The notes under the pieces: generated by a model | What the model saw: only the letters and a program-made list of their open reading frames with translations | What the model was told of the DNA's origin: nothing | Databases searched by the model: none | NCBI GenBank assembly: GCA_907165135.1 | Contig: OU015566.1 | Span: forward strand, 1,240,001-1,304,000 | Direction: 5' to 3' | Length of the DNA stretch: 64,000 nt | From: Oikopleura dioica | Lineage: Eukaryota; Animalia; Chordata | Program-made: the position numbers and the translations under genes | Shown here: piece after piece, positions 10,087 to 31,200 of the stretch | Layout: each line of letters starts with the position of its first letter | Position numbering within the stretch: position 1 is the first letter of the stretch

Positions 10087-12439
10087 ATGAAAAAATTTAG
10101 TATTTTGATCCTCAATTTTATCAAAAATTCAAAAGCACAAATTCAATGGGCTCCGAATTTTACGACTGAAGACATAGAAGAGAAGAGTGAATCATCAAAA
10201 ATCGTAGCAACCAAACCACTAGCGATTGAAAACTTTGTTGAAACTGTAGAAATGCTGGAGATACAACAAGAACTCTCGGAAACAGGAAGTTTTCAGGGAA
10301 TCGCCCAGTGTTGGAGATGTACAGAAGCGACTTCATACGAAGGTATGTTTTTGTTCAACAAGGGTTGCCAATTTTTGAATTTTTTTCCGAAAAATTTTCA
10401 AAAAAAATGGCGATTTTTCTCATTTTTTTTGAGAGAAAATGCACTTTTGGATTACCAATAAGATTGCTGTACTTGGCCTCACAGCCAATCAAAATCCTGA
10501 TCAGGAAAATAACTTCCATTTTTTGGTTCTACCAATTTTATTGTCAAAAAAATCATGCATTTTTATGATGAAGTTGGTTGCCGCCGGGTAAGAGTTTGTT
10601 TCCAATGAAGTCTTCTCGGCGGCGGTCGGGCTACTGGAATAATGAAATGCGCAATGATCTGGTCCAAATGCGCCATGTATCCGTTCACGGTGCCGAACTT
10701 GGTCAAGAGAGCTCGTTTTCGCGCTGCTGGGATTTCAGCATTTGCAGTTGCTATTGAATCGATCAGCTCGCAAAAATCTTGCATGCGTCTTAAAATCACG
10801 GTTCTGGAGAAATTCTAAGCGTGAACGGGTTTTTATTGAGAGCCGCGTGCGCCATAATCATCTGCAATTTCGTCGAGTAGATTTGCAAGGTCGAGGTCGT
10901 AGACGAAATCATCCCTGACTTCATAAGAGATGCCTCTCGCGACTTCAAGCGGATCTGGGCTGGGCTCGGCAACCTGTGTAGAAAACCTGAGTCAGGGTCA
11001 GAAAGATCTTTCAATTATAGATCTTTCACACCCTGACTCAGGCTTTCTACACAGGTTGCCGAGCCCAGGGTCTGGGAATGAGCTCGTATCAAGCTCATCA
11101 TTTCCGGTGTCCTGGGTTCCTTGGTCTTAAAATACAGTGTTATCCTTTTCCCTTTGAATAATCCCACCTAAAGCTTGTTCTAAAATCATCCTCGCACTTT
11201 TTTGAAGCGTCCAAGCAACTAAAAATAAAAGAGGGCAAAACTAGATCATTGCTTTTTTTAAAAGTACTTATGAATTTCTTCTTGCAAATATTCCCCTCGA
11301 TTGCAGCCGACTCAACATTCGAGAGAATCGAAGCTTGTTCCGCTCGTTCCGAAACATGAAGAATTCCGTTGTGTCCTCGGGAAAGGGTTGAACGAATCGC
11401 TTCGTGGACATTTTCGTCGCTGGTTAAAAATCGGCCCATAAAGATCAAATTCAACAGTTTTCCATCTTTTCGCAGTTTTTCGCCGACTTTTGGAAGGTTC
11501 AAAAAATCGCGATTTTGTCAACTGACCTTTTTTCTTTGCAGATTCTAGCGTCTCTGTTTCATCAAAGTCGACACTGTAACTTGCTTCAGAATCAGCTGTC
11601 AGAATTTTGAATCGAGCCATTTTTAAATTTATGACAAAGTTTCATTTTTTTCTTCTGGAGAGCAACCAACCAACGCTTCTTTATCGATTTCTAGAGCTTC
11701 AAAATCCTGTTCAGATTGCGCCACTCACGGAAAAATCGAAACATGCGCTGAAGATGCAGAATGCTACATCGAAGCAAGAATCAGATCTGCTTCTGTTCGT
11801 CGGTTTACCACCGGCTGCAAGCTGGCTAATGCATGCAACGATTTGAAGAATCAGAATTTCCGAGGGCCGAAGGTTTGGAATCAGTGCAAACCGGAAAATC
11901 ATCAGGAAGAGAGCGATGTTTTTGGAGAGTCAGTTTGTCGGCAGTGTTTTAGGAACAGAATTAAAGACATTTTTAGACATTTTTTAGACATTTTTTGACA
12001 TTAAACCGACATTTTTCAGACATTTTTGACATTTTGCCGACATTTATGAGACAAATTGGACATTTAAAGACATTTACGACATTTTCAGGCATTTTTTAGA
12101 CATTTTTAGACAATTTTTTGACATTTTCAGACAATTTTAGACATCTTCTGACATCTCAAGACATTTTGAGACATTTTGAGACATTTATAGACATTTTCTA
12201 GAAATTTTCAGACATTTTAAGACATTTAAAGATAAAATATAATTCTTTCGAAAAACCTTGATAATCCTGTGAAAAGACCATGTGTTCAAGAAAAAGACGC
12301 CTCAAGATGTTTTCAAACAACAGGAGAAAATCTCGGAATCCCCAACTGGGACGATTTTGGGACGACTTGGGATGTTTTCGGCAATACGACGCGATGGTTT
12401 TGGACTTCAAATTTGCCGAAACGACAGTCTGAAAAATAA
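10087..12439 (+). CDS. Secreted cysteine-rich-domain protein, resembling larvacean oikosin-type Cys domains
   Basis: Signal-like MKKFSILILNFI. Exon 1 ends QCWRCTEATSYE-g (10342); GT-AG intron 10343-11714; exon 2 continues DCATHGKIETC...CYIEARIRS...TGCKLANAC...QNF...QC...SVCRQCF; GA-AG intron 11953-12276; last exon RPCVQEKDASRC...*. Confidence 0.65.
10563..11620 (-). CDS. BAG6: Short BAG6/Scythe-like protein (N-terminal ubiquitin-like domain plus BAG6-type helical region), nested antisense in an intron
   Basis: UBL: MARFKILTADSEASYSVDFDETETLESAKKKVGEKLRKDGKLLNLIFMGRFLTSDENV. Downstream PAQIRL and RRMQDFCELIDSIATA...VARPPPRRLH resemble BAG6 EPRVRL and RRLQPF...LACTPPRHLH as I recall them. Far shorter than vertebrate BAG6. 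Confidence 0.6.
10960..11068. mobile_element. 109-bp hairpin element at an exon junction of the BAG6-like gene (candidate introner, copy 1)
   Basis: 50-bp arms with 3 mismatches (CTGGGCTCGGCAACCTGTGTAGAAAACCTGAGTCAGGG... / ...CCCTGACTCAGGCTTTCTACACAGGTTGCCGAGCCCAG). Carries an in-frame stop if unspliced. Homologous to 31027-31122. Confidence 0.8.
11953..12276 (+). other. Non-canonical GA-AG intron with complementary ends
   Basis: TTTAG|GAACAGAATTA ... TAATCCTGTGAAAAG|ACCA; removal gives C-F-R-P-C in frame; ACAGAATTA pairs with TAATCCTGT (8 of 9). Confidence 0.6.
11963..12228. repeat. GACATTT(T)-core minisatellite filling the GA-AG intron
   Basis: More than 20 imperfect 9-11 nt units such as TTAGACATTTT. 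Confidence 0.85.
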
Positions 12440-12548: not shown

Positions 12549-13047
12549 ATGAGATTTTTCAAGGTAAGCAGAAAATGAAATCTTCAAAATGAAAGAGTTA
12601 TTTTAGCTTTTTGTTTATTTTTTCGGTGTTTCCTTGAGCCAAAATTATCAAAAAGGGCAAAAAGGGGAGAAAGGAGATCGAGGACCTCCTGGCCCTGCAG
12701 GAAATTGTCGAAATTTTCTCAAAAAAGATGAATTTTGAATTTCTTTTGACCAATCAAAAAGGCCATAAAGGCACCCAAGGAATGATGGGCGACGAAGGAG
12801 CAATCGGCCGGGATGGTGCTCCCGGATTGCCTGGTGATCCCGGAGAAAAAGGTTTCAAAGGAGAAGTCGGTCGTGAAGGACATCAAGGAAAACAAGGCCC
12901 GATCGGAAGAAAGGGAGAAAAGGGCAAGCCGGGAAAAGGAAGAGTCAAGAGAAGAGAAATCAGGGAGCTGGAGTTGCTGGTTATTGAACTGGGCTATCAA
13001 CTTGAAGGTGAGCTACATTTTTTAAAGATGGCATTCAAATGCAATAA
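12549..13047 (+). CDS. Short secreted collagen-like (Gly-X-Y) protein
   Basis: MRFFK|LFVYFFGVSLSQ signal, then an uninterrupted G-X-Y run GQKGEKGDRGPPGPA|GHKGTQGMMG...GEKGKPGK and a short C-terminal tail; 4 exons. Confidence 0.8.
12701..12761 (+). other. Non-canonical GA-AG intron with complementary ends
   Basis: GCAG|GAAATTGTCGAAA ... TTTTGACCAATCAAAAAG|GCCAT; this removal keeps the Gly-X-Y register (GPA-GHK); ~10 bp stem with one bulge and one G-U pair. Confidence 0.8.
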
Positions 13048-14065
13048 AAATTGTTTTATTAATTTTATGACAATAATAGTAAAGCAGGACTATCACATTT
13101 ATTGGTAACTGTAATTATATTGGTGCATTTCATAAATTGTCATCATATTTCAAGTCCAACATCAAAATTATTTCGTCACAATTTCTTCCCTCCAGGCATT
13201 GATGTCGTTCTTATACCGCAGTCTAAAACAGATAAGCAATTGGTATTTTATATGCTACTCTAGTTTTGAGTAAAAATATCAAGGCAGAAATTTGGAAATA
13301 ATTATTTCTTGAAGTCAGAAAAAAATTTTTTTTTTAGATTATTTTGTATAATTTATATAATACATATAATTTTTAAAAATATTAAAAAGCTTCATTCTTT
13401 ACATTTTTTTGCGGTGAATTTCCCTTTTACGAGTTTAGTTCTTGACGCTCCATTTTATCTTTTCCTTCCTCTCAATCTAAAAGATCATTTTATAATGGGT
13501 CAATATGCAAAAAAATAACTCATATCAGTTGCTAGAGAGTCGTCCAAAAAAGAGGTAGCTTTTGAATGGTTTGAGTTGGAAAAAAACAAGTTTTACGCTC
13601 GAATGAACGAACACAACTTTTTTTAGGCCCACAAGGCATTCTAGTCGAGCTAGAACAGATAAACCTATTCGGTCGTCTTACCCTCCCGTGATGGATGGCT
13701 TACTCCACATTTGAGCGCTCTTGGTCGAAAATTTTGGCGCGCGGGAGAAAAAAAGGAGGAGAGGAATTCATTTACCGCAAAGAAAATTAAAGATTCTATA
13801 AAAATTAAAATGACTTTTTAGCTCTCGGCGTTGACATCGACCCAATCGACTTCAACGAGTAACAACCGACCAAGGAAAAAATCCAACTCCTGACCAAAAA
13901 ATCGAATCGAAAATAAACTCTCACGCATTTTTTTTACTTGAGAACTCAATTAAAATCTTGCATCCGCGCTTCAGCTGCTTCCAGCTGACCAGATGAGTTT
14001 GCGGTTCGGGGGAGCATTTAAATCGCAATTTCTCACATGATTTGGCTAATTTCTATTTTTCAAAA

Positions 14066-28237: not shown

Positions 28238-31200
28238 CTATTGTGAGATAAAAAATGGGATAAAAAGAAGCATAAAATTGAACACAGTTCCGATTTGAGA
28301 ACTCGTCGTTGTCTCCATCTGAATTTCAAACCGTCGCTCGGTGCATTTGTAATCGCGGATTTCCCCATCAATCACCACATTTTTACAAAACATGTCTTCG
28401 CCGCAAATGTTCGGGAAGCTATCACAAATCGATCCTTGAACGCAAATGTCTTCGACAAAAAACCAACCAGGCTGGTCACAGTGGCACTCGAAGCTTCCAT
28501 CAGTGTTTTGGCAGCTGTTTCCGAGAGGACAAGGGTTGGAGTTTTCGCATTCGTTGATGTCTTTTACGAGTTTTTCTCTTTTATCTAAATTGGCTCGTTC
28601 CTGCCTTGGAGAAAACTCAGTCCTTGGCAATGTCCACTTTCGGATTTTTTAAATCCAGCTTTACATTCACAGGTATAACTAAAAACATCATCACCCCCCT
28701 TTTTCATTTCTCAAAAAATACCTGGCTGGTCCAGTAAACAAGCACTTTTCCGTCGCAAGATTGCATGGATCATTTTTGCATCGATTAATCGCGGAGCACG
28801 AGAATCCGTCTCCTTCGAAATTCGCGTTGCAAGTGCATTTTAGCGAGCTTGCTCCGTTTTGGCACTTTGCATCAGGGTGGCATTGGTCGGGATTAATAGC
28901 GCAAAAGTCGACAAAGTCGTCGATTTCGAGGGATTCTTCGACGGCTTCGATGATGATTTGCTCCATTTCGGCGAATTGATCCGCGATGCTTTCATGAGTT
29001 TTCATGATAAGATGCATCAAAAACTTATTTAGCCAAAATTCTTGATTTTTTAAAAACTCTGGTTATTGTGTTCCGAAATATTTCTTTTGTAAGCATTTGG
29101 ATTGAATTTCATTTCTTCGTTTGATCTTGTCGGATAAACAGGCATCCAATCTTCGAGGGTGCCGGAAATGCCCTTCGTGAAGTAGTCGTAGGCTCTGATT
29201 GCCGAGGTAGATCCTTAAAACGATGCAAAAAAAAACGGATAAAAACGCTTACCAGCGACGTTGAAATAAAGCTGATCAATAGCAATTTCCGGCCTGTGAA
29301 TAAAATCCACATAAGATTTCCCCAAATCTCTGACGAAGCCGAAAGTAAAGTCATTTGCCAAATCTCGATCGTAAAAAGTATAAAGAGAAGAAGGCTGTGA
29401 CGTCCATTTTTGAAGTGGAGGATGTCGGGAAGACAAGGAATCGTGGTGGTAATCGATGTCGGTGAAAATGTGGACCTGTTTGATTGAATCGGGGTCCCAG
29501 TTGACGGCGGGATCTGTCATGGTGAAGATGATTCCGAGCAGCGGATCTAGAAATGATAATTAGACATTTTTCTGAGAAAAATGTGGAACCTTCTGGAGCA
29601 TCACCGCCGCCATACATATCGTTTATCTTCGAAAAAGCTGAATCGAAAGAGCTTCCAAATGAGTACTTATCAACTTCTTTCAAAGCCAGTCCAGCCTGAT
29701 AAACCTTGTTTGTCGACGATGTCATCTCATTTTGATTAAAAAATCGGTCGGCGAAGAATGTCATACCCATGCGAAACTCAAAATCGGCGTATTTGGGTCG
29801 TTTCTTTGAAGATTATTGAGAAATAGAACTTGATCCTTGAACGCTTTCTTTGCATCGTTTTGATATCCCGTGTAGGAGCCAGTTCCGTCGATGAGCCAGA
29901 CAATGTCGATCTTTTTCTGCTCGCAGCGAAATCCGCCTTCAGTGTTGATACAGTCTCCCGGGTTCGAGCAAGTATTCAAATCAGGATCGACGCATTCGTT
30001 GACGTCCACACAGGCCGAATCTCTGAGTTCGAAACCGTCGGCGCAAATGCAGTTGAATCCGTCGATCGTTTCTTCGCATTTGTTCAACCCATGGCCGCAG
30101 GGAGGTGGGTTTTGGAGGCAGTCGTTTTTCGATGGACACGGGTACTTGAAGTTGATCTTGACAAGATCGGCGGCGGAGAATGGCTTGTGAAGATCAACAG
30201 GAGCGAGTTGACTTGGTCGGGAAGGGTGGTGGATGTTTGGCAAACCATCGCTGTCAAATTTCAGGCTCAATATATATATATATATATTATGGTATGATAT
30301 ATATTATATATCCCTGAGCTACTACTACATATGATCGATGAGACTTTTATTTCATGATTTTATCCTCAAGTAAAATTTCCATTTTAATCGTGATCGAATG
30401 ATCTTATGGTTTCTCTAGTATAAAAAAATTGGATTTTTTTCTGATTGATTAAATTTAAATTCGTTTTGAGCCCTTATCAAGATACGCCGGGTGATGAAGA
30501 ACTGAGTGGAAATCATAATCGACGTAGATTTCCTTTTCATCAAGAGGAAATTTGTAAAACTCCGTCGTTTTCGCAAATTTCTCCGTGACGCCCATGTGAA
30601 GATCTCTGTGATATCGGCTTGATTCGTGGGTGAAGCCCAAAATGTGCATGAAAAGATGAATAACTCCAGTTCCGTTGTTCATTTTTGGACAATCTGGCCT
30701 CATTTGCAGCGTCTGATTCCCTCGTTTTCCCAAAAAAGCAAGGCAAGGAAAATCCGGTTCCAAATTTTCGCCGATTTTGAACGCGTTTGGGAATGATTCC
30801 AACTCGGATTCGGAGATTTCCAAGAATTCAATGCAGGTGTTCTCCTTGAATTCTTGCGCCTGTTTTCTTACTTCTGCGATAGCAGAGTCGCCAAAAAAGA
30901 TGTTTTCATATTCGTCGATGTACGCCGTCTCGTGGAAATTTTCCGAAAAACAAAATGGAACGATGTACTTTTTGTACTTTTCGTCCCAATGGTCATTCCA
31001 AAGAGGGATGTTTAGATGATCTAGAATTTGGCTGGGCAACCTGCTTGAAAATCTGAGTCAGGGTCCAGAAGGAGCCCGCGAAGGACCCTGAGTCAGGTTT
31101 TTAAGCAGGTTTCCGAGCCAAAAATCTGGAGTATCAGCGCAGATGACGTCACTTTTGAGCGCGGGAGGGATGGACCATCCGTTCAGCTCGAGAAATTTAG

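Follow-up and report, generated by a model that had tools for sequence, protein, structure and literature searches.

A palindromic miniature transposon within coding exons of Okinawan Oikopleura dioica as a candidate source of newly born introns

The origin of new spliceosomal introns is a long-standing question, and transposon-derived introners are its best-documented route, nearly all documented cases coming from protists and algae. In Micromonas, Polarella/Symbiodinium and Amoebophrya, introners occur in many copies and have terminal repeats and target site duplications (TSDs) (PMC11282704, PMC7789003). Introns derived from miniature inverted-repeat transposable elements (MITEs) are an established finding in algae and dinoflagellates and also in the larvacean Fritillaria borealis (PMC11282704). 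Here we describe a hairpin of 109 nucleotides (nt) in a 64,000-nt window of Oikopleura dioica, a cultured chordate with extreme intron turnover. The window is the whole stretch analysed (contig OU015566.1, positions 1,240,001 to 1,304,000; G000:C4:1240001-1304000 in the assembly searched, which has 64,281,565 bases in 19 contigs). The hairpin is a copy of a palindromic, non-coding, cut-and-paste MITE with roughly 900 copies and 8-bp TSDs, and in the Okinawan lineage it landed in mid-exon, in coding sequence. The reading towards which the evidence leans is that the spliceosome would remove it from the RNA as a newly born intron, with splice sites that the element itself supplies.

Like the introners of Aureococcus anophagefferens (Huff et al. 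2016; Gozashti et al. 2022), the O. dioica element is a short non-autonomous DNA transposon with an 8-bp TSD that lies in coding sequence. The spliced product in Aureococcus keeps 4 nt of the element together with the 8-nt TSD and thereby gains four amino acids (PMC9860276), and one of the splice options offered here, from a GC at element base 5 to the terminal AG, follows the same +12-nt arithmetic. Unlike those introners, the O. dioica element is a near-perfect palindrome that presents the same signals in both orientations, and its host is a chordate; neither Oikopleura nor tunicates are mentioned in the text of the large introner survey (PMC9860276). The protist introners named above supply one or both splice sites and have TSDs of 3-5 bp, compared to 8 bp here. 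Splicing in Aureococcus is documented by RNA, as are the splice boundaries in several of these protist cases, whereas in O. dioica both are predicted from sequence.

Within the larvaceans, the MITE-derived introns of F. borealis (Henriet et al. 2019, as summarised in PMC11282704) are non-canonical, mostly AG-AC or AG-AT, with a short TAC-type target, and are handled by a permissive U2 spliceosome. The O. dioica case shares with them the larvacean host, the terminal inverted repeats with TSDs and the lineage-specific positions, but differs in its 8-bp TSD and in having no consistent non-canonical boundary pair. The AG-AC and AG-AT boundaries themselves do not occur at the element studied here, where exact removal would need CC-AG, AC-AG or other pairs that vary from copy to copy. 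Intron gains by transposon insertion have also been attributed to O. dioica by Denoeud et al. 2010, as tabulated in PMC3443670; they come from this species complex and invoke the route of intron gain that is proposed here.

The element, its duplications and the exon that it interrupts lie in the window as follows.
10960-11068, no strand assigned: palindromic MITE copy of 109 nt, recognised by its inverted repeat, its fold and its family matches.
10952-10959, no strand assigned: TSD copy lying downstream in the gene, GATCTGGG on the plus strand and CCCAGATC in gene sense.
11069-11076, no strand assigned: TSD copy lying upstream in the gene, GGTCTGGG on the plus strand and CCCAGACC in gene sense.
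10998-11000, minus strand: TGA, the first in-frame stop when the exon is read on into the element.
11069-11125, minus strand: upstream part of the interrupted exon (...QGTQDTGNDELDTSSFPDP), placed by frame and orthologues and conserved as GDELDSRALPDP in two orthologous contigs (L030 and L031).
10851-10951, minus strand: downstream part of the interrupted exon (LEVARGISYEVRDDFVYDLDLANLLDEIADDYG), placed by gapless alignment to the same two contigs.

An earlier note on this DNA had described a near-perfect 109-bp hairpin, and its anatomy is as claimed: two arms of 50 nt (10960-11009 and 11019-11068) are 94% complementary and flank a 9-nt loop, and the predicted RNA is paired from its first to its last base at -95.5 kcal/mol (z = -14.1; shuffle mean -37.7 kcal/mol, with 0 of 200 shuffles folding as well). 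Its account of the ends gives way to a different one. The CTG and CAG that were taken for site-specific inverted repeats are part of the terminal repeat of the family consensus, and direct duplications, thought to be missing, are present immediately outside as the 8-bp pair listed above. The two copies match at 7/8 positions, the sole difference being a synonymous GAC/GAT change, and the total insertion amounts to 109 + 8 = 117 nt.

A BLAST search of the assembly with the element gave 87 scored matches out of 1409 first-look candidates. A search of the genome for the 32-nt terminal-repeat core at 3 mismatches or fewer gave 879 forward and 874 reverse occurrences, compared with 0 for a reversed control pattern; as each copy has two arms, these counts correspond to roughly 900 copies. 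From 28 aligned full copies the consensus terminal repeat reads CTGGGCTCGG...CCGAGCCCAG, with the ends given as CTGGGCTCGGCAACCTGTGTAGAAAACCTGAGTCAGGGTC... and ...CCGAGCCCAG. Direct repeats of 8 bp stand immediately outside the ends, perfect in 17 of 74 paired copies and with one mismatch in a further 16, and the target is weakly palindromic, with C or T at position 2 and A or G at position 7, each in 26/33. Terminal inverted repeats, a TSD of fixed length, and small, non-coding units in high copy number are thus all present, which are the features that define a MITE. Copies range from 93 to 339 nt, in classes of about 105-120, 170-200 and 230-250 nt whose termini are shared (loci L032-L091), and the 109-nt form is the shortest among several subfamilies with common ends. 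At another locus (L023:1508-1883; G000:C4:3561474-3561849), three family copies stand head to tail at a spacing of about 130 nt with poor TSDs, and this triple looks like a small tandem array rather than separate insertions.

The earlier note had called the window copy young, which is doubtful: its TSD differs at one position in 8, its arms differ at 3/50, and the closest other copy is 91% identical. Dating it by divergence from the consensus was dropped, as copies with perfect TSDs are also 10-15% off the consensus because the loop varies among subfamilies.

That the insertion lies within an exon follows from the orthologues, which are metagenome contigs from related Oikopleura lineages. These were found with the open reading frame (ORF) of the next exon, whose query (10566-10799, minus strand) returned a 75-amino-acid metagenome protein and its cluster mate. 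Both contigs carry the uninterrupted peptide (GDELDSRALPDPLEVGEAINYEVRD and GDELDSRALPDPLEVGEAINYEVRDGIVYDLDFANLLDEVAEDYG), while the coding order in the window is ...GNDELDTSSFPDP, the element, and then LEVARGISYEVRDDFVYDLDLANLLDEIADDYG. When the element and one TSD (117 nt) are taken out, the window aligns through the junction to both contigs with no gap, so the insertion must have occurred inside a coding exon, specific to this lineage, and not in an older intron. The element was inserted between ...SFPDP and LEVARG..., duplicating CCCAGA(C/T)C. The same alignment bears out the earlier claim that both flanks are coding and the empty site that was to be looked for in related lineages, and it rules out that the segment upstream of the element (11127-11069) is non-exonic, which the note had named as the finding that would speak against it. 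The downstream frame that the note had read, D-P-A-Q-I-R-L, is open but wrong; the orthologues show ...PDP|LEVARG..., PDPLEVARGISYEV... instead. Further protein searches with a word index, using three pieces, gave orthologues at 60-80% identity or no match, and two metagenome scans, one with the upstream exon and one with the terminal-repeat core, gave no match.

An in-frame stop had been noticed in the element, and the TGA at 11000-10998 is indeed followed by another two codons on in the frame of the minus-strand gene. Because of these stops, making the protein requires that the element be taken out of the RNA.

A second copy in the window occupies a comparable position in an unrelated gene.
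31026-31122, gene on the minus strand: diverged family copy in an exon of an astacin-family gene, with TSDs GATCTAGA (31018-31025) and AATCTGGA (31123-31130) that match at 6/8.
The earlier note had placed this homologue at the same phase as the first, and both copies are indeed inserted after the first base of a codon, the second in a gene for an astacin-family metalloprotease. A metagenome orthologue (P0008) is uninterrupted at this site and equal in length after exact excision. The second copy is older than the first; it has lost the terminal AG and the internal GT and has a 1-nt indel at one end, by which the GC donors and the internal acceptor come to be in frame. Both family copies of the 64-kb window lie in exons.

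Insertions of this kind are not confined to the window. The count of exon-interrupting copies that the earlier note had called for alongside a genome-wide BLASTN was made in a sample of 79 loci picked blind to location (19 from BLAST hits and 60 around perfect arm matches). A copy was taken to interrupt an ORF if, after virtual excision, the ORF had at least 150 codons with at least 40 on each side and the TSD had at most 2 mismatches. With ORF length as the proxy for exon, 9 of 41 copies (22%) interrupt long ORFs, the figure for 2440 control positions drawn from those loci being 11.8%; the excess is slight (binomial p = 0.047), and no depletion is seen. TSDs with 0, 1 and 2 mismatches number 3, 3 and 3 among the exon-interrupting copies and 14, 13 and 5 among the others, which indicates that the former are not younger than the rest. 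At least 12 genes are interrupted, namely the two in the window and those at L013, L021, L024, L026, L034, L035, L036, L048, L051 and L058. They include a gene with a GT14 Branch domain (L021), a Sulfotransfer_2 gene and ELP2 (Elongator protein 2). Insertion-free orthologues are at hand for both window copies and for the L035 gene, whose three orthologues lack any interruption and agree with it in length once the copy is excised exactly; at L021 the same is indicated by a Pfam profile that is contiguous across the junction. The persistence of insertions in long intact ORFs of conserved genes argues that the element is removed from the RNA, and the family, taken together, shows no depletion in long ORFs, as would be expected of an intron-generating element, a notion that is thereby indirectly supported.

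If the spliceosome removes the element, its last two bases, AG (10961-10960), would be the acceptor, and the donor would be one of two, a GT at 11052 (element bases 17-18) or a GC at 11064 (bases 5-6). Because the TSD adds 8 bp, the number of element bases retained must be 1 modulo 3 for the frame to be kept. Four pairs satisfy this rule: GT(17-18) to the terminal AG (11052..10960, 93 nt removed, +24 nt), GC(5-6) to the terminal AG (11064..10960, 105 nt removed, +12 nt), and two GG donors, at base 3 (11066..10974, +24 nt) and at base 9 (11060..10974, +30 nt), joined to the internal TTTTCTACACAG acceptor. With the first two pairs the mRNA would retain 16 + 8 = 24 nt or 4 + 8 = 12 nt and so gain 8 or 4 codons without loss of frame at any phase of insertion, and the palindrome would provide the same options in either orientation. 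The 50-bp stem would also bring the intron ends together in the RNA.

These signals recur through the family. Among 11 exon-interrupting copies examined, the terminal AG is present in all 11 and the GC at base 5 in 10, while the dinucleotide at base 17 is GT in 9, GG in one and GA in one. Splicing from GT(17) or GC(5) to the terminal AG is stop-free and in frame wherever the donor dinucleotide is present, and candidate in-frame G*-AG pairs (a donor starting with G and an AG acceptor) are available in 11/11. The neighbouring intron of the interrupted gene is itself a putative GC-AG intron. The splice choices of the earlier note differ from these. It was right that the upstream part of the exon (11125-11069) contains no GT, but the three splices that it held to keep the frame remove 106, 91 and 79 nt, and each of them shifts the frame relative to a 117-nt insertion. 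What stands of the intron-generating element that it proposed is a mobile element in coding sequence, with empty sites in relatives and no depletion from ORFs; its anatomy, frame and splice choices do not hold.

Several points weigh against spliceosomal removal through sites within the element. Exact excision is impossible with a donor starting with G and an AG acceptor and would need CC-AG or AC-AG, and 38 nt would remain, out of frame, after splicing between the two sites that look most canonical, GT(17) and the internal TTTTCTACACAG acceptor. The candidate splice sites are buried in a very stable stem, and an insertion of 4 or 8 residues might not be tolerated in conserved domains such as GT14. 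When transcripts or gene models were sought by running phmmer with the next exon against 1.84 billion representatives, the matches were metagenome orthologues only, none of them from the Okinawan lineage. The comparison with control positions, in turn, uses ORF length, which is only a proxy for exons, and has n = 41 copies.

Perhaps the element is instead a disruptive insertion allele, which is rather unlikely though to be taken seriously. The MITE would then be retained in the RNA, or splicing from GT(17) to the internal AG would cause a frameshift and nonsense-mediated decay, so that the gene is null or weakened on a haplotype that segregates in the population or is turning into a pseudogene. 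The missing exact G*-AG splice and the frameshift caused by the best-looking internal pair would fit such an allele, as would the origin of the assembly from one male with merged haplotypes (PMC8008620). The TSD has already diverged (7/8), however, so the insertion is not brand new, and the flanking exons are still open and conserved. Across the family, exon-interrupting copies occur at a frequency equal to or above that of random positions and are not younger than the others, and the genes that they occupy are conserved, with long intact ORFs, which also speaks against it.

A further alternative, improbable on the present data, is the exact removal of 117 nt by hairpin-guided non-canonical splicing, with CC-AG boundaries at 11076..10960 or AC-AG boundaries at 11071..10955, in the manner of the MITE-derived non-canonical introns of F. 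borealis or the nonconventional introns of euglenids. The stem begins and finishes precisely at the element ends, excision restores a gapless orthologue alignment in every case examined, and introns of this type are documented in another larvacean (PMC11282704, citing Henriet et al. 2019). Against this, the boundaries needed vary between copies and follow no common dinucleotide rule, the terminal AG being the one recurrent feature, and the TSD begins with G in just 2/11 copies. The non-GT/AG introns of O. dioica are, moreover, reportedly mostly G*-AG. In the Okinawan assembly OKI2018_I69, where the median intron measures 49 bp, non-GT/AG introns make up about 11% of the total (PMC8008620).

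It is very improbable that the hairpin represents a gene for a structured RNA, for instance a microRNA precursor, and not a transposon. Rfam assigned it to no family at gathering score; its weak matches to several microRNA precursor models, the best reaching 53.9 bits for MIR859, where the gathering score is 130, are far too low and are spread over many unrelated models, as for any long hairpin. The roughly 900 copies with TSDs are moreover the mark of a mobile element, from whose hairpin small RNAs could still arise as a by-product. The weakest explanation, in which the element is a passenger in an older, larger intron and 11125-11069 is non-exonic, is refuted by flanks that are conserved as protein and contiguous, with no intron there, in two related lineages. 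Removal by the spliceosome through element-supplied sites is hence the reading retained here.

The affinities of the family were also considered. hAT-type elements make 8-bp TSDs, and the terminal motif 5'-YARNG is frequent among them, if not universal. The termini of the family (5'-CTGGG in the 28-copy consensus) do not show this motif, whereas the 8-bp TSD and the weakly palindromic target fit hAT; the family is thus hAT-like, but not proven hAT. At L099:1501-1971 (G000:C3:1859826-1860296), a match to Dimer_Tnp_hAT of 28 bits marks a fragment that looks degraded. About 290 nt downstream of it stands a solo end, ...ACACAGGTTGCCGAGCCCAG, identical to the last 20 nt of the family, and the sequence between the two is rich in CCTGTC/CCTGTG of subterminal character. 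This locus is possibly a degraded autonomous parent, recognised by one of its ends. Seven near-identical matches to the hAT dimerisation domain, each in an open frame of 177 amino acids, were seen elsewhere (G000:C1:636914, 641782, 732634 and 737494; C5:13847453; C4:380299 and 393172). None of the seven has a terminus of the MITE family within 1.5 kb, and they probably represent a separate, possibly active hAT family.

The remaining features of the interrupted gene are these.
10815-10850, minus strand: putative 36-nt GC-AG intron after ...DDYG, placed by frame and orthologue.
10566-10814, minus strand: next exon (NFSRTVILRRMQDFCELIDS...ARPPPRRLHWKQ), the one whose ORF led to the orthologous contigs.
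The junction at the 36-nt intron reads ...DDYG|gcacgc...cttag|NFSRT, and at this donor site one orthologous contig (L030) reads GT. The predicted GT-AG intron that precedes the upstream part of the exon ends in ttttaag (11126). The name BAG6-like, given to the gene before, finds no backing, as seven exon-sized ORFs, each searched alone, had no Pfam or PDB match. Just upstream of the gene, on the opposite strand, lies a collagen-like Gly-X-Y ORF (12728-13108, plus strand).

More tentatively, the family may constitute a live intron-birth system able to work in any exon, phase and orientation, leaving a scar of 4 or 8 residues, with hundreds of copies seeding introns in Okinawan O. dioica, a chordate that can be worked with in the laboratory; the terminal AG and an internal donor starting with G would be spaced so that the retained element bases plus the TSD always add up to whole codons. 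If true, an element of high copy number in exons of conserved genes, together with empty sites in sister lineages, would make direct tests of intron birth possible in this animal, and the response of a permissive spliceosome to insertions that form hairpins could be learned from it. Should the insertions go unspliced, the O. dioica genome would instead carry a notable load of exon-disrupting transposon alleles.

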